Sequence record: PV764603.1
DNA length: 64,000 nt
Strand: one strand, 5' to 3'
In this document: one piece after another, positions 895 to 30,796 of the stretch
Layout: every line of letters starts with the position of its first letter
Position numbering within the stretch: position 1 is the stretch's first letter
Position numbers and translations under genes: made by a program
Notes under the pieces: model-generated
What the model saw: only the letters and a program-made list of their open reading frames with translations
Database searches by the model: none
What the model was told of the DNA's origin: nothing

Positions 895-1138
895 ACTCCT
901 GTTTGGTGCCCTGTACGTCGTGTGCGTTCTCCTGTTTTCGGTCTTTATCAACCGCACCTACGTGATCGGGAAGAACTTGGACAGCAAGCAGGATGCAATC
1001 AACACGGAATGGTGTGAAGAACGTGGTGGCCACCTAACGTTCCAGCGATACCCGCCACGCACTTTCTGCATGAAGGATGGCGTAGAGGTTGAACCGCAGT
1101 ATCTCAAGTCCGAAGTTTGGATTGGCACTACCCCTTAA
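872..1138 (+). CDS. small membrane-anchored protein
   Basis: N-terminal hydrophobic helix LLFGALYVVCVLLFSVFI, then a domain with two Cys. Confidence 0.65.
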   Translation: MMKRQQRKLLFGALYVVCVLLFSVFINRTYVIGKNLDSKQDAINTEWCEERGGHLTFQRYPPRTFCMKDGVEVEPQYLKSEVWIGTTP

Positions 1139-1155
1139 TACCGCAATCTCAATAG

Positions 1156-1163
1156 TGTAAATA
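1156..1163 (+). promoter_or_regulatory. TGTAAATA promoter-like motif (variant of CTGTAAATA)
   Basis: intergenic, 60 nt upstream of ATG 1223; motif recurs upstream of many genes. Confidence 0.55.
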
Positions 1164-1222
1164 ACCTATGGGTGGTATGCTCCGGCATGCCGCTCATTTT
1201 TCATTTCCCAATCGGAGTTTCC

Positions 1223-2032
1223 ATGTCTCATCAGCAACTCAACGCCAACGTCAATAACCTCGTAGGCAATACCCCGAACGCCCACCCGCTGCTGCGCATC
1301 CTGACCTCGCAAGGTCGGATCATCAAGCAGGAAGCGGAAGAGTTGATGGCCGCTATTCTGGCCAAGGACATTACCGAAGTTCGTGACGGTCTGAGCGACG
1401 TGATCGTTACCACTGACGGCATGTACCATCGTCTCGGCATCGAGGGTGCCGATCTGGAAGAAGTGGCAAAGAGTGCGGCGGACGTTTCTGCCGTATACCC
1501 GATCAAGAGCGCACCTTCCCTGCTGAGTATCGTGCTGGAGCAGATCAACGCTCAGATCAACTTCCTTGCTGTCGTCGGTGGCCTGACCCAGGATCAACTG
1601 GACGGCATGGCATTCAAGAACCACACCTCCACGAAGGAACAGGCCAACGAAGCTTGGATCAAGGATACCATCGCCAGCTGTGATATTCTGCGCCGCTCTG
1701 CCTACCTGTTGTCTTCCATGTTCGGTGTTGACATTGCCGCCGACCAGCAGGCTGTGTACGAATCGAACATGAGCAAGTTCGACACCGACCGCAGTGTGGC
1801 TGAGGAAGGCGTCGGTCGCTACTGGCGTACCGTTGGTGTCGAAGTGGAAATCTTCCCGAACACCATCAACGACGTGGAATACTTTGTCCTCAAGTCGGCC
1901 AAGGATCAGAAGGGCACTGACGGCAAGGACTACCCTGCTGGTAAGTTCCTCAAGTCCAGCAACTTCTTCGAGCCGCGCTTCCAGCCCTTGCCGGAAGACG
2001 CACCCATCTTTGAACTCCTCGCTTCCAAGTAA
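1223..2032 (+). CDS. MazG-like / PRA-PH family (d)NTP pyrophosphohydrolase
   Basis: IKQEAEEL...EVRDGLSDVIV acidic helices and YESNMSKFD motif; start moved to ATG 1223 after a GGAG RBS. Confidence 0.75.
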   Translation: MSHQQLNANVNNLVGNTPNAHPLLRILTSQGRIIKQEAEELMAAILAKDITEVRDGLSDVIVTTDGMYHRLGIEGADLEEVAKSAADVSAVYPIKSAPSLLSIVLEQINAQINFLAVVGGLTQDQLDGMAFKNHTSTKEQANEAWIKDTIASCDILRRSAYLLSSMFGVDIAADQQAVYESNMSKFDTDRSVAEEGVGRYWRTVGVEVEIFPNTINDVEYFVLKSAKDQKGTDGKDYPAGKFLKSSNFFEPRFQPLPEDAPIFELLASK

Positions 2033-2865
2033 TGAAGGCTGTACTGACTGTTTCCAACAATTGCATCGCGGATACCCTCAAGCTCGTCAACCGATGGGCT
2101 GAGGGTCATCCAAAGAAACCGAAAGTCGAATTGATTGGCTTCGGAGAAAAGCTGCGTGACGCAGACGTGCTGTTGCTGCCCGCTTCCTCCATGCTGTATA
2201 GCGCACGGGAGAAGTTGGCCAAGATGAAGTCGGTGGTGATTGTGTTTGACGCCCCGCTCCAGTGCACGATGATCCAACCGGCAACGCATCTGGACATTGA
2301 GTATCAGCGTCCTAGCTACAAGTGTGCGTTCCGTAAGCTGACTCAGGGATTGGTCAGTGAAGAACTGGACAAGGCGTTCGGGGCAAAGTCTGTTGACATT
2401 GAGTGGGAGCGGATTGAAGTCGCTCCGCGTTTGATGAACCAGCAGCTTACCAGCATCCTGAATCCGATCATGACATTCCTGCATTCTGTGCGTGACCCTG
2501 ACAACAGGCAGCACTATCAGAAGCTGGTATATACATGGTTGTTCTCTGACGCTCCTGTCAGTGTGCTGCAATCCAAGATCATGGAAGACGGTAACTACAA
2601 GAAGGTTCCCGCCGCACTTGCCAAGCTGGTCGAAGCTATGACGCCAATGGACAAGGCACGCGAGGCATTCCGCGAAGTCCTGAGCAGGACGGAAGCGGGT
2701 AAGGCGGTGAGCTACAAGAAGTTGAGTGCGAAGTACGGAGTGGCTGTGTTTGACCTCCGGTATACGATGAGTGTTGTCCGCAAACTTGGCAAGTATCATG
2801 TGGTTCAAAAGACGGTCAAAGAACTGTATGACACCCGCCAGAAAGAGAAGCGGTTGAAGGAATGA
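2032..2865 (+). CDS. hypothetical protein (277 aa)
   Basis: long coupled ORF; no family recognised. Confidence 0.7.
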   Translation: MKAVLTVSNNCIADTLKLVNRWAEGHPKKPKVELIGFGEKLRDADVLLLPASSMLYSAREKLAKMKSVVIVFDAPLQCTMIQPATHLDIEYQRPSYKCAFRKLTQGLVSEELDKAFGAKSVDIEWERIEVAPRLMNQQLTSILNPIMTFLHSVRDPDNRQHYQKLVYTWLFSDAPVSVLQSKIMEDGNYKKVPAALAKLVEAMTPMDKAREAFREVLSRTEAGKAVSYKKLSAKYGVAVFDLRYTMSVVRKLGKYHVVQKTVKELYDTRQKEKRLKE

Positions 2866-2925
2866 AATTTTGCAATTTCATCTTGCCCCTCTGAGGGCAT
2901 TCCCAAACTCATCGGACTACTGACC

Positions 2926-3267
2926 ATGAAAGAAATCTCCATTGAATCACTTGACCATCTGGATGAAGTGGTCGCCAGCAACCCGCTGGTGATCGCCAAG
3001 TTCGGTAAGGACAACTGCCCCGGCTGCAACGCTCTGGATATTACATTGCAGAACATGCGTAGCAAGGCGGAGTACACTGAGGTGGTTGTTGCTAACGTCA
3101 AGTTGGAGAAGATCGGCCGTGATGAATTCATCACTGTAGCACGTGCAGCCCCTACCACTCTGCTGTATCGGTATGGGGACGAAGTGTACCGCCTCAACAG
3201 CTTTACTGGCGCGGTGCCTTTCATCAGTGCAGTTGACCAGCATCTGCTGTCCAGCTGTGAAGCGTAA
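2926..3267 (+). CDS. thioredoxin
   Basis: KFGKDNCPGC CxxC motif; directly upstream of nrdA. Confidence 0.85.
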   Translation: MKEISIESLDHLDEVVASNPLVIAKFGKDNCPGCNALDITLQNMRSKAEYTEVVVANVKLEKIGRDEFITVARAAPTTLLYRYGDEVYRLNSFTGAVPFISAVDQHLLSSCEA

Positions 3268-3342
3268 GTGAATTAAATCCAACTAATAGACCAAGGGCGT
3301 ACAGGGCTTACACCCAACTACGTCGGCGGTTGCAGGTGAACC

Positions 3343-5859
3343 ATGATTAAGACGATTATCAAGCGGGACGGGCGAGTAGAAGATTTTAGCCCGGAGAAGA
3401 TCAATGGATGGGGCGTGTGGGCAGCGCAATCCCTAGGCGGTTACGTAGATTGGTCCGGCGTTGTGATGACTGCTGTGGCGGGTCTGCCTGAATACTGCGA
3501 TAGTGAGAAGCTGCAACTGGCGCTCATCCAAGCCTGTCTGGACCAAGCGGATTGGGCACACAATCGTATGGCGGGACGTCTCTACACCGCACTGCGCCGC
3601 AAGCAACTGTTCGACGGTAAGGTTCCGACCTACCGCGAACTGCAAGAGCGTATGGCTGAACACCTCGGTGATGTGGTCGAACGTTATGACTACACCGATG
3701 CTGATTGGGAAAAGATCGAGGGCATGATTGACCATGACCGAGACTTTGGCTATGCGTACTTCCAGACGGATCACATCCGCAGGAAGTATTCGCTGCGCGA
3801 CCGCGTTGCAGGTAAGGAGTACGAAACTCCGCAGTTCACCTTTATGCGCATGGCGAGTTCGCTTGCGCACGATGAACCCAAGGCAACTCGCCTTGAGCAC
3901 ACCCGGAAGTGGTACGACCACTTCTCGTACAACCGCATCAACGCTCCGACCCCTAATTGGGTCAACCTCGGTACGTCGCATCGTGGTTACGCGTCGTGCT
4001 GTCTGTATACCACGCTGGACACGGAACCCTCGTTGGAAGTGGGCGACCATATCGCGCGCGCCATGACGGCGCAGAGTGCAGGCATCGGCGGCATCATCCA
4101 GAGCCGGAGCCTGAGCGACAAGGTGCGTGGTGGTTTGATCGAGCATCAGGGTAAGCTGCCCTACTACACTGCACTGGCTGGCGCTGTGAAGTCCAGCTTG
4201 CAGAACGGTCGCGGTGGTGCGTGCACTACTTACTTCTCGGTCTACGACCCTGAGATTGAAGTGCTGATTCGCCTCAAGCACCCGCTTACCCCGGAAGAGA
4301 AACAGAACCTTGACATTGACTACAACGTCATCTTCAATCGGTTCTTCGTGCGTCAAGCTGCGCTGAATAAGCAGGTGTTCCTGTTCAACATCAAGTCGGC
4401 TCCTGATCTGTGGGAGGCGCAGTTCCAAGGTAACCCCGAATTGTTCGAGTCCCTGTACGCCAAGTACGAGGCCGACGATTCGTTCGTCAAGAAGTACGTC
4501 AGCGCTCGTAAGCTGGCGGTGAATGTCATCAACGTTGGCCTAGAGACGGGTCGCCTGTACCTGTTCAACAGCGACGAGGTGAACATCCACACTCCGTTCA
4601 ACGACTCCATCTACAGCAGCAACCTGTGCGCTGAAATCACTGAACCGACCTACGGTTACGAGTCGATGCCTGACCTGTATACCGACGGCCCGGTTGGATA
4701 CATTGAGGTAGAGGTTGTTGGAGCGGGAGACACCAAGACTACCCAAAAGCTGTCGGCACCTAGCAAGGTCAAGGTGCAGCGTGATGGTGTGGACCGAGTG
4801 ATCGCTGCTCAGGAATTGAAGGAAGGGGACGTTATCACCGTCGGGCAGCCGCTGGAGAAGCTAACTGCTCCGGGCAAGGTAACTAACCTGACGTACTACG
4901 ATGCACAGACGGTTGAGCGTATTATCAAGCTCAAGAAAGAACCGGAAGTCGCAATGTGCTCGCTGGCTGCGCTGTGCGTGCACAACATCCATTCCCAGGA
5001 AGAGTACGAGGACGCTGCTTACTACGCCCTCAAGATGATCGACAAGGCTATCCACCTGTCGGATCATCCGCTGCCTCACGTTGCATGGAGCAGCCGTCAA
5101 CGCCTGTCTGCTGGCGTTGGTATGACGGGTGTTGCGTACTACATGGCTCGCAAGAAGCTCAAGTTCAACTCGCCGGAAGGTATGCGTGAACTGCATCGAC
5201 TGGCCGAGCGTCACATGTATGCCCTCATCAAGGCTTCGCTGCGCCTCGGTAAGGAACTCGGAAACGCACCGTGGATGCACCGTACCAAGTGGCCGCAGGG
5301 TTGGATGCCCATCGACACCTACAACCATCGGATCGATGAGTACGCTGACTTCCCGCTGGAACAGGATTGGGAAAGCCTGCGTGCAGAAGTGATTGCCAAT
5401 GGTGGTATTCGCCACTCGGTCGTGTGCGCGCACATGCCTGTGGAGAGTTCCTCGAAAGCTTCCGGTGGTCCCAACTCGCTGTACCCTGTTCGTGGGCTTG
5501 ACCTGTCCAAGACGGATCGTGGTTCGGCACTTGAGTGGGTGGCAAACGATGACGTGAAGCTGCGTCGTCACTACCAGCTGGCGTGGGATATTCCCATGTC
5601 GGATATGGTCAAGGTGTACGGCATCTTCCAGAAGTTCTGCGATCAGGCCATCAGTGCTGATATGTGGCTCAAGCTGGAGGCAGACGCATCCATTACGGAT
5701 CGTGATCTGCTGCAACACATGATTGATATGACTCGCTACGGCATGAAGACTCGGTACTACTTCAACAGCATGACCTCCATCGTTGGTGACGACGGCGAAG
5801 TTACGCTGGTCGAAACCGAAAAAGAGAACGCCTGCACCAGCGGCGCGTGCGACGTTTAA
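3343..5859 (+). CDS. nrdA: class Ia ribonucleotide reductase alpha subunit with N-terminal ATP cone and an internal insertion
   Basis: IIKRDG ATP cone, ASCCL, SSNLCAEI (Asn/Cys/Glu active site), TRYYFNS, C-terminal CTSGAC. Confidence 0.97.
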   Translation: MIKTIIKRDGRVEDFSPEKINGWGVWAAQSLGGYVDWSGVVMTAVAGLPEYCDSEKLQLALIQACLDQADWAHNRMAGRLYTALRRKQLFDGKVPTYRELQERMAEHLGDVVERYDYTDADWEKIEGMIDHDRDFGYAYFQTDHIRRKYSLRDRVAGKEYETPQFTFMRMASSLAHDEPKATRLEHTRKWYDHFSYNRINAPTPNWVNLGTSHRGYASCCLYTTLDTEPSLEVGDHIARAMTAQSAGIGGIIQSRSLSDKVRGGLIEHQGKLPYYTALAGAVKSSLQNGRGGACTTYFSVYDPEIEVLIRLKHPLTPEEKQNLDIDYNVIFNRFFVRQAALNKQVFLFNIKSAPDLWEAQFQGNPELFESLYAKYEADDSFVKKYVSARKLAVNVINVGLETGRLYLFNSDEVNIHTPFNDSIYSSNLCAEITEPTYGYESMPDLYTDGPVGYIEVEVVGAGDTKTTQKLSAPSKVKVQRDGVDRVIAAQELKEGDVITVGQPLEKLTAPGKVTNLTYYDAQTVERIIKLKKEPEVAMCSLAALCVHNIHSQEEYEDAAYYALKMIDKAIHLSDHPLPHVAWSSRQRLSAGVGMTGVAYYMARKKLKFNSPEGMRELHRLAERHMYALIKASLRLGKELGNAPWMHRTKWPQGWMPIDTYNHRIDEYADFPLEQDWESLRAEVIANGGIRHSVVCAHMPVESSSKASGGPNSLYPVRGLDLSKTDRGSALEWVANDDVKLRRHYQLAWDIPMSDMVKVYGIFQKFCDQAISADMWLKLEADASITDRDLLQHMIDMTRYGMKTRYYFNSMTSIVGDDGEVTLVETEKENACTSGACDV

Positions 5860-7057: not shown

Positions 7058-8092
7058 TTGACGATGGCGAAGCCATTGAAGGAACAGGACACACCGAATT
7101 CGGTTGCAGCAGAAGTCATCATGCGCAATTTGCCGAAGGTGCCTGGGCCTAAGAAATATCAGAGCAAGGGTACGATCAACATTTGGTGTCCGTTCCACGG
7201 TGACCCGAATGAACGCATGGTAGGCAACCCCTCCTTCATGCTCAACCTTGCTGCTGGCGAAAGATTCCCTGTCGGATTTGGTCATTGCTTCTCTTGCGGC
7301 AAGACTAAGAACTGGAATGACATTGCAGCAAAGTATGGACTAGAGAGATATGGCGAAGGCGATGACGCTGACATTTGGGCAGTGAAGCCGGACTTCGACA
7401 AGCTCAGTGATCGCATGTTCGCGGAAGATGATGGCGAATCTCTTGACCACCTGTGTCCTCAAATGCGAATCCCTTTCCACCTCGGGTGGCAGAAGGGTAT
7501 CAAGTGGCGCGGCATCAAGTCGAAGACATTGATAAGCATCGGGGCGCACTATGGTCTTGACGAAGAGACCGAAGATCAGGCGGTGATCCTGCCAGTCAAT
7601 GTGCAGGGAGATTTGGTCGGGGCAGTCAAGGCGCGGTGGAAGCCGCAGGACGGCAGCCCTAGCTATATCAACAGCCCCGGCAAATGGACAAAGCGTAAGG
7701 GCCTGTTCCTGCTGGATGAGTCGCTGGAACTCGGCGATGGGGCAACGATTATTTTGGGAGAAGGTCCACGCGATGGCCTGCGGTTGTACCAAGATGGTCT
7801 TCCCGGCGTAAGTATTCTAGGCGTCACCAACTGGACGAAGCAGAAGCGCGATCTGCTGCTGGAAGCTGGGGTTGAACGTATCATCCTGTGTATGGATGGT
7901 GACAAGGCTGGTAACGAGGCGATCAAGAAGATCAAGCCTGACCTGATCGGGTACTTTGACGTGTACGTGTTCAACCTCAACAAGTGGCGCAAGAGGTTGA
8001 AGTGGAAGAAGATGGACCCAGGCAACATGCCAGAGGAAGTCCTAGAACGCCTGCGCAAGATGTATGAGCGGGTATCAGAAAGTGATGAGTGA
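7058..8092 (+). CDS. DNA primase (Zn ribbon + Toprim, no helicase)
   Basis: WCPFH...CFSC zinc-binding domain; ILGEGPRDG and ILCMDGDKAG Toprim motifs. Confidence 0.88.
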   Translation: MTMAKPLKEQDTPNSVAAEVIMRNLPKVPGPKKYQSKGTINIWCPFHGDPNERMVGNPSFMLNLAAGERFPVGFGHCFSCGKTKNWNDIAAKYGLERYGEGDDADIWAVKPDFDKLSDRMFAEDDGESLDHLCPQMRIPFHLGWQKGIKWRGIKSKTLISIGAHYGLDEETEDQAVILPVNVQGDLVGAVKARWKPQDGSPSYINSPGKWTKRKGLFLLDESLELGDGATIILGEGPRDGLRLYQDGLPGVSILGVTNWTKQKRDLLLEAGVERIILCMDGDKAGNEAIKKIKPDLIGYFDVYVFNLNKWRKRLKWKKMDPGNMPEEVLERLRKMYERVSESDE

Positions 8093-16784: not shown

Positions 16785-17460
16785 TTACTCTTCGTCGTCC
16801 TCTTCATCTTCTTCGTCTTCCTCTTCCTCGTCTTCTTCCTCTTCTTCTTCTTCTTCCTCTTCCTCGTCGTCTTCCTCTTCCTCGTCGTCTTCCTCTTCCT
16901 CTTCCTCGTCTTCTTCTTCTTCCTCGTCTTCTTCTTCTTCTTCTTCCTCTTCTTCGTCTTCTTCCTCTTCCTCGTCTTCTTCCTCTTCCTCTTCTTCTTC
17001 GTCTTCTTCCTCTTCCTCATCCTTCTTGGACTTCTTGCCAGCAGCCTTCTTGCCACCCTTGGCCGGCTTCTCTTCCTCCTCGTCTTCCTCGTCCTCTTCC
17101 TCGGCGTTCATCAGCTCCGCGATCTGCTCCTTGATTTCGTCGATCTGCGCTTGCAGCGACTCCAGAGACAGTTCCGACTTCTTGCCCTTACCCTTGGCAG
17201 CGGCCTTCGGCGCAGCCTTGGCTGCCTTCTTGCCACCCTTGGCCGGCTTCTCTTCTTCCTCTTCTTCTTCTTCTTCCTCTTCCTCGTCGTCTTCCTCTTC
17301 CTCTTCCTCGTCTTCTTCTTCTTCCTCGTCTTCTTCTTCTTCCTCGTCTTCGTACTCTTCGTCTTCGTCGTCACCCTTCACCGACTTCTTGCCACCCTTG
17401 GCCGGCTTCTTGGCAGCGGCCTTCTTGCCACCCTTGGCCGGCTTCTCTTCCTCGGCGTCA
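16785..17460 (-). repeat. GAA/GAG/GAC low-complexity coding repeat with four KPAKGGKK repeat units
   Basis: repeated TTCTTGCCACCCTTGGCCGGCTTC blocks and TTC/CTC/GTC triplet runs on the + strand. Confidence 0.9.
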
Positions 17461-18182
17461 CCGCCAAAGGTGTAGATGCCCTCGTCGGCCAGATAGGTCA
17501 GGAAGCCCTTGAGGCCATCCTTGCTGTTGATCGGATCCAGCGTCGGCAGCAGCTTGGCGATGGCAGCACCGTTGCTGTGCTTCTTCACGTCAATGTCGCC
17601 GTCCTCGTAGATTTCCGAGGCCCACTTGTTGTGAGCGACAGCGATGGCCTTGGCCTGCTTGTCGGTCAGCTTCTTGGCTTCCTTCTGGATGTCCGCGATT
17701 TGCAGGCCATTGAAGACGGCGCGGCCAGCAGCGGCCTTGGTGTCCTTCTTGGCAGCGGCCTTGGCCGGAGCGGACTTGCCCTTACCCTTCGCAGCCGGCT
17801 TACCCTTGCCGCCCTTACCCTTGGCCGGAGCCTTGGCGCTCGACTTCTTGCTCACGACCTTGGCCGTCTTCTTGGTGGTGGCCTTGGTGTCCTTCTTCGG
17901 GGCAGCCTTGGCAGCGGTCTTCTTGGCGACCGGCTTCTTCGCAGCAGCCTTCGGCGCAGCCTTGGTGGTCTTGGCGGCAGCCTTCTTGGCCGGAGCAGCC
18001 TTGGTGGTCTTCGCAGCAGCCTTCTTCACGGCCGGCTTCTTGGCGGCAGCCTTCGGCGCAGCCTTGGTGGCCGGAGCCTTCTTCGCAGCGGTCTTCTTCA
18101 CGGTGGTCTTTTCCGATTTGCCCTTGGCAGCAGCCTTGGTCTTGGTGGCGGCGGTCTTGGTGGTCTTCTTGGTGGTAGCCAT
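16785..18182 (-). CDS. histone H1-like Lys/Ala-rich protein with very long poly-Asp/Glu tracts (465 aa)
   Basis: N-terminal AAKK/KKAPA repeats, about 90-aa non-repetitive core, three acidic tracts separated by EEEKPAKGGKKA repeats. Confidence 0.85.
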   Translation of the reverse strand: MATTKKTTKTAATKTKAAAKGKSEKTTVKKTAAKKAPATKAAPKAAAKKPAVKKAAAKTTKAAPAKKAAAKTTKAAPKAAAKKPVAKKTAAKAAPKKDTKATTKKTAKVVSKKSSAKAPAKGKGGKGKPAAKGKGKSAPAKAAAKKDTKAAAGRAVFNGLQIADIQKEAKKLTDKQAKAIAVAHNKWASEIYEDGDIDVKKHSNGAAIAKLLPTLDPINSKDGLKGFLTYLADEGIYTFGGDAEEEKPAKGGKKAAAKKPAKGGKKSVKGDDEDEEYEDEEEEEDEEEEEDEEEEEEDDEEEEEEEEEEEEKPAKGGKKAAKAAPKAAAKGKGKKSELSLESLQAQIDEIKEQIAELMNAEEEDEEDEEEEKPAKGGKKAAGKKSKKDEEEEEDEEEEEEEEDEEEEEDEEEEEEEEEDEEEEEDEEEEEEDDEEEEDDEEEEEEEEEEEDEEEEDEEDEEDDEE

Positions 18183-18314
18183 GTGAAACAGTTTCCTTAT
18201 AAGGATGAATGGTTGGGTAGTACGTACATGGTTGGCCGTTCGGCGAACTCGTCCATGCCCGAATTCGCTAAAGTGTGCAGCGCCGTCCGGCCTAGCTCGC
18301 CGCTGCATATCCCT

Positions 18315-24685: not shown

Positions 24686-24877
24686 TTATCGTAGTTGTGC
24701 AGTGTGCTCAATGCGTTCACGCAGCTTGTCGGTGTCGAACGTCTGCTCCATCAGCAGCTTGTTGACCCACAGCTGGTACTCTGTTCGGCCGTCTACGTCA
24801 CGCTTCTTGATGACGTAGCTCTTGCCGTTGTGCGGCGCCACCTGTTCGGTGACAATCTCCCATGTTACTCCTGCCAT
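24686..24877 (-). CDS. hypothetical protein (63 aa)
   Basis: short ORF overlapping the E1 stop. Confidence 0.55.
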   Translation of the reverse strand: MAGVTWEIVTEQVAPHNGKSYVIKKRDVDGRTEYQLWVNKLLMEQTFDTDKLRERIEHTAQLR

Positions 24878-25548
24878 GTTACGCTGTGCATTCCCCATTC
24901 TTCACCCACGCTTGTCACCACCGTGTTAGGTGTCGGGCGGCCCATGACGAAATTCATGAACTGCCAGATCATCTGTGACGCGACAATCTGCGCCGTAGCT
25001 CCGACACTGAGGGTTGCCCCACAAGCCGCGCGCTCTACATTGGCGTCGTCGTCATCGAACAGGCCACCAATGTAATTAGTGCGTTGCCATTCCTTGCTGC
25101 GATCAAGCAGGAACGAGATTGCATCCCGGGCTCCCATGCGTCCATCCAGAAACGCACCACCCTCACACGGCAAGTAGTTCTCCGCGAAGGCACGGCGCGA
25201 TGCCATGTTGTCCACGCATACGAACACATATGGAGTGGCCTCAAACCTGGGCTTATTGAGGCGGCGAGGACACGCGCCCACTCGCGTGTCCGAAACTTGA
25301 CGCAGGCGATCCACCAAGGCAACAGCCTTGTTCGTCCCCACGTCATCGGGACCGTACAGGCATTGGTTCGGCAGGTTGTGGGATTCCACCACGTCATCAT
25401 CATAGACAACGAACGGTACACCGATCTTTGACAACTGCAACGCTACCGCGCTGCCCAAGGCCCCTGCCCCGACAACCACCGCAGGCGTGCGCTCAGTGGC
25501 CTTACTCTTGCTCAGGTCGAAGATACCGGTCAATCGAATTTGATCCAT
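24865..25548 (-). CDS. E1-like / ThiF-family adenylyltransferase
   Basis: GAGALG, DDDVVESHNLPNQ, NKA, VCVDN, DGRMG, and a candidate catalytic Cys in ERAACG; no Zn CxxC pairs. Confidence 0.92.
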   Translation of the reverse strand: MDQIRLTGIFDLSKSKATERTPAVVVGAGALGSAVALQLSKIGVPFVVYDDDVVESHNLPNQCLYGPDDVGTNKAVALVDRLRQVSDTRVGACPRRLNKPRFEATPYVFVCVDNMASRRAFAENYLPCEGGAFLDGRMGARDAISFLLDRSKEWQRTNYIGGLFDDDDANVERAACGATLSVGATAQIVASQMIWQFMNFVMGRPTPNTVVTSVGEEWGMHSVTWQE

Positions 25549-25560
25549 CGTTAGTGCTCC

Positions 25561-28239
25561 TTAAAGTTCATCATCCTCAATATCATCGTCGCACTCGCAA
25601 TCTTCTGGAGTGCACAAGCAGCGGTTGCAACACTTGCAGGGAGAGGACTCACAGTCCGAGCAGCAACTGCACCGAGTACGCTTGCACGTACCACAACAGC
25701 CACATTCTTCGCTCGGCTCATGTTTGCAACATACGCACTTGTGTTGCAGCATGTTACAGCCGGGGCAACTTTCGTTGCTGATGTTGTTCAACTTGAAATA
25801 ACCTTCGGTTACATGGACCAACTCTTCAAGCCTCAGCACTGTCTCCCGAGTAACAGGAATCCTGTGCCAGTCTAGTTCCGCATTGGACACCTGTGCAACG
25901 ATGTTGTCGAACTTCGGATTGCTAGTCTGACTCTTCAACGCAAGCAACTTCGAGCCTGATGCTCCCATGTTTTGATGGGAACCCTTCGACCTCCTGCGTG
26001 TACCAATTGGTGACAGGGAGGGCGCCATGTTTCCGATGAGGTCTTTCCACGGAGAAACCGCCATGTACTCAGCGTCGGGCTTGTCTCCATACGTCTTGGC
26101 CCATGCCCTCACGTACAGGTCGTTGCGATCCGGCGTAGCCAAGAAGTCGTAAAGCAGCTGCAACCTGTAACGCAAGTTACCTACAACCGAATTGGAAGCG
26201 GTGGAAATGTGATCTTCCAACTCGCTATGGAACGAACCTAAGCACAGGGAGCCATGCGACTCTTGGCTGCTCGGGACAGCCATGTGTGGATGGATGCGTA
26301 TACGCAGCCGGGGCTCAGAGTATTCCAATTCGTAGGCAAGCGGTGCTGCAATGTTGCGAATGGCGAGGTCGGTATTGACTAGAGACAGTGCAATCTGATA
26401 CTGGCCAATGTAGAACTGGCTTGGCACCGCCCGGTTATCCGTTTCGTCCTCATCGTCAAAACCTGACACTTCCGGCGGCTGGTAGTACAGGTCATTCGTT
26501 TGGACGATGACCGTGCCCGAGGGCAGCAACTCCACATGCTCAATCCACGTGTAGCTATTGAGTTCTGCCAGCGCGAGGTTCACGTCCTCCGCAGTGAAAG
26601 AACAGATGCGACGAATCTGCTCCTGCAACTCGGCCTTACGTGCACGCAAAGCCAGCAGCGACTTTGTGGTTTCCGTCAAGTCCCGTTCCACGTCCTCGTA
26701 ATCATGCAGGAGCGCCGTCGCCCGCTTAATCTGAATCCCTGTAACCAAGGAATCCTGAGTGGATACAACGTCCGTAGTCAGCGAGTTAAGCAGGGCATGA
26801 TACGTGAGGGCAGGAGAAGCCGACAGGAAGATATTACCTACCCGCACCACCGTAGGTGCGGTGCCCTTACGGAAGCGTTCCCACTTCATCACGCGGCTGG
26901 GAAAGTCACGTGTGTCAGGATAGCCCGATATGTAACCAAGGAAGCGATCCTCGTATGGGTCTAACGCAGAATCGAAGACTTCCGCGATGGCCTTCCATCC
27001 AAGGTTGACCAGCATGGATTCAGCCTTGGCTTTCGTCTCAGGAGTGACATTGAAGTGGATGCCCTCGATATGAGCGGGTCCATACAGCCTGTATTGTGTA
27101 GGCTCTGTCACTTGGAAGCCGAACGTCCTGCGCACTGCTATGCGACGCTCTTGTTCTTTACGATCGGCCTCAAACTCGCGCTGGCTGCGCCCTGTGTCGA
27201 AACTGAGGCGTTCCATCCAGTTGATGAGTTGTGTCTCGTTCTCCATAGCCTCCAGAGGAATGACCAGCGGCATGCGTCCGACGCACGCCATCGCGTACAT
27301 GTGGACTTGATCCTCCTTCATCATTACCTGTTCGACGCTAAAATGAATTTGGCTTGTTGCAGCCCGCCGACTGAACACGTCGTTTGCCAAGGCGCTTTGC
27401 AGATTGCGGAAGTCAATCTCGTATAGTGGAATGGAGTCTGTGTTGCCATTCACGAACGCCTGCTCACGGGTGGACTTGTAGTTGTCCGGATCATCGTCGC
27501 GGGCACGGTCTTGGGACAGCAAGATGAAGAAGAACGCCCACACATGGTACACGTCAGGGAACGTGTTGGAATCCATCAAATCCCACTTGCAATCTTGCAC
27601 GGGGAATACGTCGTTACCGAAGCACTGCTCAGTCATGGCTCGGGCGGCTACGCCAAGGTCGTTCGTGATGTGACCTGTACTGAACTCAGTTACCGAATTG
27701 TATTCGTGTGCGTTAGAACCCGACATGTAGGCAGAGCGAACCGTGTTCGGCATGATGCGCTCATGGCCTGCCGCTTCCTTTGCAATCACCCAAGAGCTAG
27801 GAATGACAGCAGGCTGGTTGAATGCTGGGTATAGATCAGGGGAGTCCTTGAGGTAGGCAGCCACTGTTGGCACAGCCATCCCGAGGTACTTGTAGAATAT
27901 CTCCTGCATTTCAGGAGAGCGGCGATTACGGAACAAAGTCGCCATGTTCTCCCGCAGGGAGTCCACGATGAAAAGAATGCAGGCGCGAAGCGTGGCGGTA
28001 TCCTGCACCTTGATGTAGGGCCTTTCTAGCAAAGGCACGTCTTCGGCCTCTACGTCAAGAGAGACACCCTTGCAGCAATCTCGGCACCGAACGTTCTCAG
28101 AGTACCTGTTCTCGGTGTCGTGGCACTCGCAGTCGCAATCGGAGGTGCAGCACATGCACTCGTCATCATCGCAGTAGTCCCACAACTGAACAACCTTCTG
28201 CTTCGCTGCTGCTTTGGGGAACCTTCCGTTACTCATCAT
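25561..28239 (-). CDS. 892-aa protein with an E2 (UBC-like) domain, a coiled coil and Cys-rich termini
   Basis: IHPHMAVPSSQESHGSLCLGSF and LLYDFLATPDRNDLYVRAWAKTY match UBC HPN..ICL and LL.DPNPDDPL..IA..Y. Confidence 0.75.
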   Translation of the reverse strand: MMSNGRFPKAAAKQKVVQLWDYCDDDECMCCTSDCDCECHDTENRYSENVRCRDCCKGVSLDVEAEDVPLLERPYIKVQDTATLRACILFIVDSLRENMATLFRNRRSPEMQEIFYKYLGMAVPTVAAYLKDSPDLYPAFNQPAVIPSSWVIAKEAAGHERIMPNTVRSAYMSGSNAHEYNSVTEFSTGHITNDLGVAARAMTEQCFGNDVFPVQDCKWDLMDSNTFPDVYHVWAFFFILLSQDRARDDDPDNYKSTREQAFVNGNTDSIPLYEIDFRNLQSALANDVFSRRAATSQIHFSVEQVMMKEDQVHMYAMACVGRMPLVIPLEAMENETQLINWMERLSFDTGRSQREFEADRKEQERRIAVRRTFGFQVTEPTQYRLYGPAHIEGIHFNVTPETKAKAESMLVNLGWKAIAEVFDSALDPYEDRFLGYISGYPDTRDFPSRVMKWERFRKGTAPTVVRVGNIFLSASPALTYHALLNSLTTDVVSTQDSLVTGIQIKRATALLHDYEDVERDLTETTKSLLALRARKAELQEQIRRICSFTAEDVNLALAELNSYTWIEHVELLPSGTVIVQTNDLYYQPPEVSGFDDEDETDNRAVPSQFYIGQYQIALSLVNTDLAIRNIAAPLAYELEYSEPRLRIRIHPHMAVPSSQESHGSLCLGSFHSELEDHISTASNSVVGNLRYRLQLLYDFLATPDRNDLYVRAWAKTYGDKPDAEYMAVSPWKDLIGNMAPSLSPIGTRRRSKGSHQNMGASGSKLLALKSQTSNPKFDNIVAQVSNAELDWHRIPVTRETVLRLEELVHVTEGYFKLNNISNESCPGCNMLQHKCVCCKHEPSEECGCCGTCKRTRCSCCSDCESSPCKCCNRCLCTPEDCECDDDIEDDEL

Positions 28240-28271
28240 CGTCGCCTTTTCGGTAGTCCTGAATGTACGAA

Positions 28272-28301
28272 AGGCCCGAGCGTCTTTCGACGCCCGAGCC
28301 T
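28272..28301 (-). terminator. 13-bp GNRA-loop hairpin with a weak U-tract (possible leaky terminator)
   Basis: AGGCTCGGGCGTC-GAAA-GACGCTCGGGCCT-TTC on the minus strand. Confidence 0.65.
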
Positions 28302-28318
28302 AGGTGGTACGTGTAGCT

Positions 28319-28741
28319 TTAGCCGCCGCTCGCCTTGGCGATAGCGGTCAGCTTGAGGTTTTCCGACAGCTTGCGGTCAAGCGCAACCGGCTTACCCTTG
28401 TCGTCCTGATACTTGAAGTTCTCGTAGCCAGTACCGCCGCCAGCCTTGATGGCCGAACGCACGGTCGAGCCTGCGGCGGCGGAGCCGGTGACGGTCAGCT
28501 TGCCAGTGACCTGCACGGTGTAGGTGGCGACTGCCACTTCCGCCGGAACGTCCGTCACTTCCGTGGTCGGACTGGCAGTTGCGGTAGCTTCTGCCTGACC
28601 TTCACTACCTGCTGCCGGGACACTGACGTTTCCATCAGTCGCGGTGCTGGTTTCCGAATTGGTTCCAACGGTGACACTACCTTCGGCAGCGACGTTGGTG
28701 GCTTCTTCGTTGTTCTGGACGTTCTTTTCATTGGTGTTCAT
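28319..28741 (-). CDS. ubiquitin-like (beta-grasp) protein ending in Gly-Gly, with an N-terminal low-complexity extension
   Basis: C-terminal about 68 aa YTVQVTG...GSTVRSAI...LDRKLSENLKLTAIAKASGG-stop. Confidence 0.8.
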   Translation of the reverse strand: MNTNEKNVQNNEEATNVAAEGSVTVGTNSETSTATDGNVSVPAAGSEGQAEATATASPTTEVTDVPAEVAVATYTVQVTGKLTVTGSAAAGSTVRSAIKAGGGTGYENFKYQDDKGKPVALDRKLSENLKLTAIAKASGG

Positions 28742-28786: not shown

Positions 28787-28810
28787 GCAGGGAGGATCAT
28801 TCCTCCCTGC
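28787..28810. other. intergenic hairpin GCAGGGAGGA-TCAT-TCCTCCCTGC
   Basis: 10-bp perfect inverted repeat; no U-tract on the coding strand. Confidence 0.6.
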
Positions 28811-28826
28811 GAGATTACTGCCGAAC

Positions 28827-29267
28827 TTACTTGACCTTCTTCTTGCCCTTCTTGCCCTTCTTCTTCTCGCCCTTCTCCGGCTTCTCAGCCTTGCCGCCCT
28901 TCGACTTCTTCTTGGCAGCCTCTTCGGCCTCACCCACGAACGAAACGTTCGTGTTGGCGACGACGTAGGTATCACCGTTCTCGGCCACGAACGTGGTGAA
29001 GTTGCCCTTCACTTCGATGGTGTCCGGCGCCACCTTGATGTTGGCCAGTTCCGCACGCGGATTCACGACCGCGATTTCCACCGAACCGTCTTCACCAACA
29101 GCGGCGTACTGCACGTTGGTGCGCGGGATGACAGCCTGCTCGAACTTGGACGAACGCGGGCGCTTGTAGTGGACGGTGATCTGATTCGCGTCTTCCGCGA
29201 CCACGGTGCCTTCGATGGTGCGGATGGCCGGCCCGTACAGGGTGGCGGTATAAATCTGCTTCGACAT
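28827..29267 (-). CDS. beta-rich protein with a Lys-rich C-terminal tail; paralog of 30017-30796
   Basis: alignable core with 30017-30796; tail KKKSKGGKAEKPEKGEKKKGKKGKKKVK. Confidence 0.75.
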   Translation of the reverse strand: MSKQIYTATLYGPAIRTIEGTVVAEDANQITVHYKRPRSSKFEQAVIPRTNVQYAAVGEDGSVEIAVVNPRAELANIKVAPDTIEVKGNFTTFVAENGDTYVVANTNVSFVGEAEEAAKKKSKGGKAEKPEKGEKKKGKKGKKKVK

Positions 29268-30016: not shown

Positions 30017-30796
30017 TCACTCGTCTTCGTATTCGTCTTCATCTTCGTCATGCTCTTCCACTTCCACTTCTTGTTCGGATTCTTCTTCGTCTTCTTCATC
30101 CTCTTCGTCGTCTTCATCGTCATCGTCATATACAGGCGGCAACGGCTTTGCGGGCTTCACTACCTTCTGTACTGGCTTGGTAGGGAAGGGAGGCGCATCA
30201 TCTTCTTCCTCGTCCTCGGTATCGTCCTCTTCCTCAACAGGAGGTGCAGGCGGCGCTACCTTCTTCTTGCGTACCGGACGTTCTTCCTCTTCATCCTCAT
30301 CCTCTTCCTCGCGGCGCTTCTTGTACGTCCGCTCGGGAATATCTTCCGCACTACGAATCTGCACAACACTGGTGATGCTAGGATGGCACAAATGAATTGT
30401 ACCGTCTTCTTCATCAGTCAGTACGTACATGCCACCCTGGACTTCAAAGTCGCTGACCTCAAACACGTCATACTCATGGTTCGGGTCATCAATCAGCAGG
30501 GTTGCCTGGGGTTCGTTGATGTAGAACGCTGCCTTGACTGCTGACAGCGGATAGGTCACGTCTTCAAACTTGCCACGGGACCGATGGATGCGGCGACGCA
30601 GGGTAATGTGAACGTCACTACGGCTAATCACCTCACCGTAGACTTCAACGATTCCCGGATGCTGAATGGTTACAGTAAAGGGAATCTTCTTGACCGGCTT
30701 CTTGTGGGCCTTTGCCTTTTCCAACTTTTTCTTGGTCTTGACCTTTTCCGGCACAGCCTTCTTGGTCTTGGTAGGCGCAGGCTTGGTTTTGCTCAT
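30017..30796 (-). CDS. protein with a basic N-tail, beta-rich core and acidic C-tail; paralog of 28827-29267
   Basis: K-rich N-terminus, D/E-rich C-terminal 90 aa. Confidence 0.75.
   Translation of the reverse strand: MSKTKPAPTKTKKAVPEKVKTKKKLEKAKAHKKPVKKIPFTVTIQHPGIVEVYGEVISRSDVHITLRRRIHRSRGKFEDVTYPLSAVKAAFYINEPQATLLIDDPNHEYDVFEVSDFEVQGGMYVLTDEEDGTIHLCHPSITSVVQIRSAEDIPERTYKKRREEEDEDEEEERPVRKKKVAPPAPPVEEEDDTEDEEEDDAPPFPTKPVQKVVKPAKPLPPVYDDDDEDDEEDEEDEEESEQEVEVEEHDEDEDEYEDE

Follow-up and report, generated by a model that had tools for sequence, protein, structure and literature searches.

This report concerns three adjacent genes of Xanthomonas phage PhiXhv-16 (GenBank PV764603.1), which lie within a 64-kb stretch matching its genome at 100% identity; we refer to that whole stretch as the window. 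PhiXhv-16 is a 229-kb virulent jumbo phage whose isolation host is X. hortorum pv. vitians. It has four close relatives, at 98.8–99.2% identity, and the paper describing this group presents it as a new phage lineage and mentions neither ubiquitin, nor ThiF, nor thiamine. The three genes occupy positions 24865–28741 of the window, all on the minus strand. From upstream to downstream they encode a small putative ubiquitin-like protein (Ubl), which we call the tag, a large protein containing a domain that resembles ubiquitin-conjugating enzymes (E2), and a protein that resembles ubiquitin-activating enzymes (E1). GenBank labels the first two coding sequences ‘hypothetical’ and the third ‘thiamine biosynthesis protein’. 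The genes belong to a long minus-strand run flanked by topoisomerase II subunits and NAD-dependent DNA ligase, and are separated from one another by 79 nt (tag to E2-like) and 12 nt (E2-like to E1). An earlier note, written from the letters of this DNA, had described three adjacent co-oriented open reading frames (ORFs) here; they lie where it had placed them, and translation yields the motifs that it quoted. The features of the locus, with the evidence for each, are as follows.

28319–28741, minus strand: gene of the tag (Ubl), 140 residues; ORF, translation, homologues in eight loci.
28272–28301, minus strand: stem-loop between the tag and E2-like genes; RNA folding.
25561–28239, minus strand: E2-like gene, 892 residues; ORF, homologues of 587–947 residues beside E1 in eight other loci.
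28054–28176, minus strand: N-terminal cysteine cluster of the E2-like protein; translation.
26689–28053, minus strand: family-specific N-terminal region of the E2-like protein, residues ~63–517; alignments A1 and A9.
25921–26688, minus strand: UBC/E2-like domain, residues 518–773; alignment A4, PDB profile search, hhalign, AlphaFold.
25588–25773, minus strand: C-terminal metallothionein-like cysteine cluster of the E2-like protein; translation.
24865–25548, minus strand: E1 gene, 227 residues, ThiF-type adenylyltransferase; Pfam ThiF, PDB profile search, conservation.

Is the association of these three genes fortuitous? Word-indexed searches with the E2-like protein and with alignment A1 returned its own cluster only, and an exhaustive HMMER search was used instead. 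This found four distant E2-like homologues (P0005–P0008); a further locus, L002, was reached through a tag 50% identical to that of the window. In each of the HMMER-derived loci and in L002 the large protein is followed directly by a ThiF gene encoding 220–244 residues, and where the contig reaches far enough upstream a small gene ending in GG-stop precedes the gene of the large protein. L011 and L012, viral contigs 238 and 206 kb long, also have all three genes, arranged differently. In all, eight other loci, divergent and of phage or metagenome origin, contain the three genes as a group; their E2-like proteins are 16–31% identical and their E1 proteins 40–68% identical, and the GG-type loci of known size are on contigs of about 200–240 kb. 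The tag, the E2-like protein and E1 are the only genes common to the lineages, flanking genes being shared only with the close relative L002. Because the triad recurs in eight other divergent loci, and because every tag (8/8) ends in GG-stop, we conclude that it is more than a chance arrangement.

In one of these contigs, L012, the segments 1062–4664 and 4705–4995 comprise two tandem E2-like paralogues, with the motif NPHGxCVGSF and a much shorter His-to-Cys spacing, and after them, ahead of E1, a small helix-turn-helix gene of the Xre type.

What kind of enzyme is encoded by the last gene of the operon? The gene begins 12 nt past the stop of the E2-like gene and has a strong ribosome-binding site, AAGGAG. 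Its product matches Pfam ThiF at 75.4 bits (cutoff 28.1; E = 4.8e-21). A profile of six orthologues, when compared with the PDB, retrieves ThiF at 2.4e-17 and also Uba1, PaaA, MccB, Uba4, MoeB, UBA5, Cap2 and BubCD. The protein contains GAGALG at residues 27–32 (25453–25470), DDDVVESHNLPNQ at residues 50–62 (25363–25401) and a cysteine, Cys176 (25021–25023). Eight residues (G27, G29, G32, D50, D52, N58, K74 and D113) are near-invariant over 117 distinct homologues; G27, G29, G32, D50, K74 and D113 are each kept in at least 108 of them. At the position of Cys176, 101 of the homologues are ungapped, and 94 of these keep the cysteine. In a MAFFT alignment with ThiF and MoeB, whose sequences were entered by hand, Cys176 shares a column with ThiF C184 and MoeB C187. 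The same alignment confirms that the zinc-binding CxxC pairs are missing, as the earlier note had remarked. Judged by its sequence, the 227-residue protein is securely a member of the ThiF family, an E1-like adenylyltransferase as the earlier note had proposed. By the same comparisons it is not a thiamine or molybdopterin enzyme: it scores 54.6 bits with the NCBIfam ThiF model TIGR02356, against a cutoff of 275, and the MoeB and UbaA equivalog models are likewise missed. Since it falls so far below that cutoff and has no zinc site, the GenBank label ‘thiamine biosynthesis protein’ is over-specific.

Does the 892-residue protein contain an E2? Its translation includes IHPH, with HPH at residues 650–652 (26284–26292), then GSLCLG, with Cys666 (26242–26244), and, at residues 695–717, LLYDFLATPDRNDLYVRAWAKTY. 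An iterated search of the fetched loci provided alignment A4, which comprises 27 diverse E2-like domain sequences that are 13–37% identical to that of the window. Cys666 is the only residue invariant in these 27 homologues, while His652, Gly612 and Gly668 are conserved in at least 90%. Many relatives have HPHIxxxGxxCLG, the exact spacing of the canonical E2 motif HPNIxxxGxICLD (HPHIKENGECCLG compared with HPNINSNGSICLD). When the family profile was searched against all PDB sequences it retrieved almost nothing other than ubiquitin-conjugating enzymes (best E = 0.005), the remainder being a few coiled-coil matches to the N-terminal helix. The resulting alignments place HPH onto HPN, the cysteine onto the catalytic cysteine, and FLxxxNPxD onto LLxxPNPxDP. 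Compared by hhalign with a small profile of four human E2s, whose sequences were entered by hand, the family profile gave a probability of 92.3% (E = 5.5e-7) over 83 columns. The AlphaFold model of the domain, built with the alignment, has a predicted local distance difference test (pLDDT) score of 81.7 and a predicted template modelling (pTM) score of 0.75. The model runs from a long N-terminal helix through a beta meander with an inserted hairpin to the cysteine loop and three helices, one of which is LLYDFLATPDRND; this predicted order fits that of UBC. A weak library match to the RWD domain of Knl1 was set aside, as it covers the coiled-coil helix only. We conclude that the homology of residues ~518–773 to E2s, which the earlier note had suspected from the motifs, is well supported by sequence comparison.

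The rest of the large protein is less readily placed. Its family-specific region (residues ~63–517) contains a conserved EGIHFN motif at 27049–27066, of which the family form is EGxHxN, with G393 and H395 invariant (alignments A1 and A9). No match to the N-terminal 460 residues was found in Pfam or the PDB, and no relatives were detected outside the family; the region is a candidate substrate-binding, E1-docking or ubiquitin ligase (E3)-like module. Both termini carry cysteine clusters, and both clusters are lineage-specific. That at the N-terminus, CDDDECMCCTSDCDCECH...CRDCC, is present in L002 and P0005 and absent from P0006–P0008, and so lies outside the conserved core. That at the C-terminus has about 24 cysteines in 62 residues, and no other real gene in the window contains a stretch of this kind; L002 has a short version.

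The tag falls into two parts. Residues 1–72 (28526–28741) form an acidic tail, rich in T, A, E and N and apparently disordered, with a net charge of -10 over the 68 residues scored. Residues 73–140 (28322–28525) form a putative ThiS-like domain that ends in AIAKASGG, directly before the stop codon (28319–28321). It is these last 68 residues that are conserved across the lineages, the invariants including G91, T93, R95, D113, K117, DRKL122–125 and GG139–140. The tails of the homologues, by comparison, are variable, 30–110 residues long, acidic and rich in N, T, A and E. Lysine 136 precedes ASGG, so that trypsin would leave a remnant with a calculated mass of +272.11 Da on a modified lysine. In one locus, L006, the tag homologue (7353–7910) is a tandem di-Ubl with the GG end on its second repeat only.

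How far does the family extend? A single E1 sequence used as query gave no matches in viral contigs; the E1 alignment succeeded, returning 162 matches of which 80 were kept, with homologues at 28–35% identity. E1 homologues also occur in crAss-like Bacteroides phages and in Flavobacterium phage FpV4. In these sister operons, proteins of ~500 and ~300 residues are encoded upstream of E1. For the first, hhalign shows homology between its C-terminus and the E2-like domain (96%, E = 2.3e-9), the consensus being NPH..C[LM]G[GS]Y. The second, deubiquitinase-like, has a complete JAMM motif, E...HxH...S..D, and its profile matches Rpn11, CSN5 and AMSH (best 2.3e-10). Two of these E2-like/JAMM/E1 sets, each in a replication module, lie at the following positions.

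L003, crAss-like bajarodcaudo virus 1: 2235–5570.
L004, Flavobacterium phage FpV4: 2494–5564.

Of the 78 viral loci with tags not ending in a free GG, 76 have the JAMM gene, as do 21 of 41 metagenome loci; no JAMM or JAB homologue was found in the window or in any locus with a GG-stop tag. In more distant sister operons the small gene after E1 encodes a ThiS-family protein, and the ThiS-like proteins of the JAMM loci end in GGI, GA, AG or KGN, or else, on weaker evidence, in VVKAD[NS]A. Tags with a free GG thus go without a peptidase, and tags with a blocked end go with one, as one would expect if the system both conjugates and deconjugates and processes a precursor. The ThiS-family proteins also bear on the nature of the tag. 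The profile of the window-type tag aligns with them end to end and in register to the C-terminus (hhalign 89.7%, E = 1.8e-6), and two sister-operon tags, those of L106 (34.2 bits) and L101 (24.9 bits), score above the cutoff of Pfam ThiS. The earlier note had found the end of the tag beta-grasp-like and had called the protein a Ubl. This alignment, as indirect support, and the GG end found in all lineages speak for that assignment; a direct match of the tag itself to Pfam or the PDB is the part that did not materialize.

Several observations on the sister loci may be recorded here. Loci L013–L090, of many uncultured phages, likewise have E2-like, JAMM (Rpn11-like) and E1 genes in replication modules, and the database labels of sister-operon genes are ‘hypothetical’ or ‘thiamine biosynthesis protein’. 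Loci L013–L022, L025, L031, L037 and others contain ORFs of 80–87 residues, ~2–4 kb upstream of E1, with weak and consistent ThiS-like matches and the VVKAD[NS]A end; to judge by sequence, they may encode precursors of tags whose C-terminus is unusual. ThiS-like proteins ending in KGN or KGNE are encoded in L095 (3329–3556), L099 (2390–2857), L101 (5823–6272) and L107 (5820–6296), and these ends are reminiscent of the C-terminal Asn that is adenylated by MccB-type E1-like enzymes. A tblastn search with the JAMM-like protein against isolated phages gave no match, the method being too insensitive here. A scan of 185,579 species genomes for the E1 signature, a pattern-based and therefore limited test, gave four weak matches, none adjoining an E2-like gene. 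The triad of the window appears as a JAMM-less branch of a much larger E2/JAMM/E1/Ubl family, apparently restricted to phages.

How might the three proteins work together? We think it probable, on the evidence of sequence and homology, that they constitute a self-contained ubiquitin-like conjugation cascade encoded by the phage. From the homologies and the conserved catalytic residues we infer the following chemical steps, direction of transfer, targets and role. The tag would be made in mature form, with its Gly-Gly end free. The minimal ThiF-type E1, with ATP-Mg, would adenylate Gly140, and the tag would then be held, probably, as a thioester on Cys176. From there it would be handed to the UBC-like domain, at Cys666, with His652 of HPH in the role of the HPN asparagine, and moved on from Cys666 to a lysine of the target. 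Binding of the target or of E1 would fall to the 500-residue N-terminal region of the E2-like protein; as E1 lacks a ubiquitin-fold domain and no E3 gene is present, this region is the candidate for E1 docking and substrate choice. The attached tag would bring with it a 72-residue acidic, apparently disordered tail. The operon is found among replication genes in jumbo, crAss-like and FpV4 phages, and action in early or middle infection is therefore suggested, on host or phage proteins, perhaps for takeover or counter-defence. The suggestion of the earlier note, that this phage possesses its own protein-tagging cascade, thus finds support in the three gene assignments, the functional steps being those that we propose here.

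How does this putative cascade compare with known systems? One of the closest is Bil (bacterial ISG15-like), operon type 6d of Iyer et al. 2006 (PMC1779556; PMC10557695). According to these sources it likewise has separate Ubl, E2 and E1 genes and a predicted relay from E1 to E2 to lysine. Bil also has a JAMM gene, as do the sister phage operons, whereas the lineage of the window has neither JAMM nor the fifth, alpha-helical protein. Bil resides in bacterial defence islands; the carrier here is a lytic phage. The type 6d E2s lack the classical His-Pro-His/Asn before the cysteine (PMC1779556), a motif that the phage E2-like domain retains. Furthermore, the phage E2 is embedded in an 892-residue protein, and the phage tag is long-tailed and acidic. 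With the PADLOC models for Bil the single match was to BilD (7.8e-6), over the Rossmann part of E1; the tag and the E2-like protein were unmatched. The type II CBASS (cyclic-oligonucleotide-based anti-phage signalling system) proteins Cap2 and Cap3, types 6a and 6b, likewise couple a minimal bacterial-type E1 with a conserved cysteine to an E2 domain, as set out in PMC10097602, and the Rossmann part of the phage E1 matches Cap2 models. On the same account, Cap2 is an E2–E1 fusion that conjugates the C-terminus of a CD-NTase (cGAS/DncV-like nucleotidyltransferase) and not a free Ubl, whereas in the phage the E2-like protein and E1 are encoded by separate genes. No CD-NTase or effector gene is annotated or was seen near the phage operon.

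ThiS–ThiF, MoaD–MoeB and SAMP–UbaA likewise pair a small GG-ending protein, of beta-grasp fold in their case and putatively in that of the phage, with a ThiF-type adenylyltransferase of ~230–250 residues that has a cysteine at the C184 position. They have no E2-like partner, unlike the phage operon, and the phage E1 lacks their zinc-binding CxxC pairs. The Bub or type 6e systems (PMC11601596, PMC11601603) are also mobile, diverged Ubl pathways, and the di-Ubl of L006 resembles type 6e poly-Ubls. In type 6e, however, the E2/RWD domain is inactive and Cys-less and a JAB–E1 fusion is present; in the phage family the cysteine is invariant and E1 stands alone. The tail-assembly Ubl TAPI of phages lambda and T1, found with JAB-NlpC (PMC1779556), is likewise Ubl-related and encoded by tailed phages. 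Neither an E1 nor an E2 accompanies it, and its gene is part of a tail-assembly cluster, whereas the present operon lies among replication genes.

A number of results weigh against the conjugation cascade. The tag has zero matches in Pfam, PHROG, PADLOC and NCBIfam, and nothing meaningful in the PDB by sequence or profile; the AlphaFold model made from its single sequence has a pLDDT of 32, which leaves its fold unmodelled. The whole E2-like protein is unmatched in Pfam (UQ_con, Prok-E2_A-E), PADLOC, PHROG and NCBIfam, and none of the 27 E2-like domain sequences individually matches Pfam, PADLOC or NCBIfam. The structural check that the earlier note had proposed gave a mixed result for this domain: the model is confident and UBC-like in its order of elements, but Foldseek returned no significant match for it in the PDB (best E = 0.4). 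Among the non-significant PDB matches, ranks 2, 4 and 6 are Atg10, an RWD domain and a Leishmania E2. Foldseek against BFVD gave no significant match either, the best being uncharacterized phage proteins. As for E1, it lacks not only both CxxC zinc pairs but also a ubiquitin-fold domain for recruiting E2, and asparagine replaces the arginine of the NLxRQ motif of ThiF and MoeB. The hhalign comparison with ThiF and MoeB aligned residues 18–125 only, and the equivalence of Cys176 rests on MAFFT. Finally, no E3, deconjugating enzyme or target was identified for the system of the window.

What other functions might the operon serve? The cascade may be real and yet be directed at competitors, excluding superinfecting phages or other mobile elements in the way that Bil tags tail proteins. 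The known prokaryotic Ubl–E1–E2 systems, as reported in PMC10097602 and PMC10557695, are anti-phage defences, and the PADLOC models for Cap2 and BilD do match E1 weakly. These matches, however, span the generic Rossmann part only, and the E2-like protein and the tag match no defence model. The module lies in replication modules and not in accessory islands, and the pattern scan of species genomes revealed no cellular counterpart. That it is near-universal in strictly lytic lineages (76/78 viral loci) argues mildly in the same direction. We consider a weapon against competitors unlikely.

Alternatively, the tag may be a sulfur carrier. E1 would adenylate a ThiS-like tag, whose thiocarboxylate would donate sulfur to a nucleic acid or cofactor, the 892-residue protein being a cysteine-dependent sulfurtransferase with metal or Fe–S bound to its cysteine clusters. 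ThiF, Uba4 and MoeB are indeed the closest solved relatives of E1, and sister-operon tags match Pfam ThiS. Cys176 occupies the position of ThiF C184, which forms an acyl-disulfide (PMC1779556), and the gene annotated as thiamine biosynthesis sits with its operon inside a DNA-metabolism module. On the other hand, the sole conserved partner is UBC-like; it is not a rhodanese, a cysteine desulfurase, ThiG/MoaE or a PP-loop enzyme. The sister operons contain a JAMM isopeptidase, a hallmark of conjugation, and E1 falls far under the NCBIfam ThiF and MoeB cutoffs (54.6 against 275 bits). Nor would one expect of a sulfur carrier the 72-residue acidic tail, which is foreign to such proteins, and the cysteine clusters are lineage-specific. 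Sulfur transfer is, in our judgement, quite improbable.

Could conjugation proceed without an E2? The tag would then be attached straight from the E1 adenylate or thioester, as with SAMP/UbaA and Urm1/Uba4, and the E2-like protein would be a substrate or scaffold. In favour, the minimal E1 has no domain for recruiting an E2, Urm1 conjugation without an E2 is documented (PMC9574740), Foldseek did not confirm the E2-like fold, and few residues of so large a protein would be needed for an E2. Yet the active-site-like cysteine, alone of all residues, is invariant in 27 very divergent homologues, and HP[HN] upstream of it and the helix motif downstream stay in the register of an E2. A merely passive substrate would hardly account for this. 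We give this scheme little credence. Adenylation of a peptide of the MccB type, as for a peptide made on ribosomes and modified after translation (RiPP), was rejected for the window, whose tag has 140 residues and a GG end and is not a short precursor ending in Asn.

We return to the locus itself and to its surroundings. The stem-loop at 28272–28301 has a 13-bp stem, a GAAA loop and a short U run. Its folding energy is -31.1 kcal/mol (z = -4.2), and none of 200 shuffles folded as well. It is kept in L002 despite a diverged spacer, a TC-to-CT change retaining the pairing via G–U. Its predicted function is probably that of a partial terminator or an mRNA-stabilizing hairpin, and it may set a high ratio of tag to enzymes. 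In a scan for sigma-70 promoters and terminators, promoter-like sites were fewer than in shuffles, and the scan was uninformative. A second hairpin, 28787–28810 on the minus strand, is a perfect 10-bp structure (GCAGGGAGGA-AUGA-UCCUCCCUGC) without a U-tract; it lies 45 nt ahead of the start codon of the tag, where the upstream gene has just ended. Directly upstream of the tag gene are two small paralogues (28827–29267 and 30017–30796, both on the minus strand; phmmer 5.8e-6) with lysine-rich and acidic low-complexity tails, conserved only in L002. That these are substrates of the tag is conceivable, as pure speculation. Further away, on the minus strand at 16785–18308, is a gene annotated as hypothetical for a protein of ~500 residues. 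The N-terminal half of this protein is histone-H1-like, with AKKPA/AAKK repeats, and its C-terminal half is near-pure poly-Glu/Asp, which explains the strong AT and GC skew of the 16–18 kb bin.

What is new in all this? The literature that we found describes bacterial Cap2/Cap3, Bil and Bub, the tail-assembly Ubl of lambda and E1 homologues in Asgard viruses, and one preprint remarks in passing on a gut-phage family resembling UBA5. No phage Ubl–E2–E1 operon, nor this family of E2s, is described in it; coverage was incomplete and an earlier description elsewhere is possible. The chemistry is familiar. The novelty is in the lytic-phage carrier, the diverged E2 family within a large protein, the tailed Ubl and the minimal, zinc-less E1.

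Prokaryotic ubiquitin-like conjugation has recently been established, in CBASS Cap2 and in Bil, as an anti-phage defence (PMC10097602, PMC10557695). A wider proposal, which we advance tentatively and with rather more doubt than belief, is that tailed phages run ubiquitin-like signalling of their own. The triad would be a branch of a large, apparently phage-restricted E2/JAMM/E1/Ubl superfamily, near-universal in lineages that include crAss-like gut phages and Flavobacterium phages. It would tag host defence, nucleoid, replication or phage proteins so as to neutralize or redirect them, as a viral counterpart of Bil and Cap2. If the phage cascade is what we suppose, a complete activating and conjugating set in lytic phages, with relatives across jumbo, crAss-like and Flavobacterium phages, would open the opposite side of the conflict over defence. 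It would also add a new family of E2s, highly diverged yet with the classical HP[HN]–Cys at the active site, and would account for phage genes, in their hundreds, that at present go under ‘thiamine biosynthesis protein’ or ‘hypothetical’. Since PhiXhv-16 is under development for biocontrol, the effect of the module on its host would be of practical interest as well.

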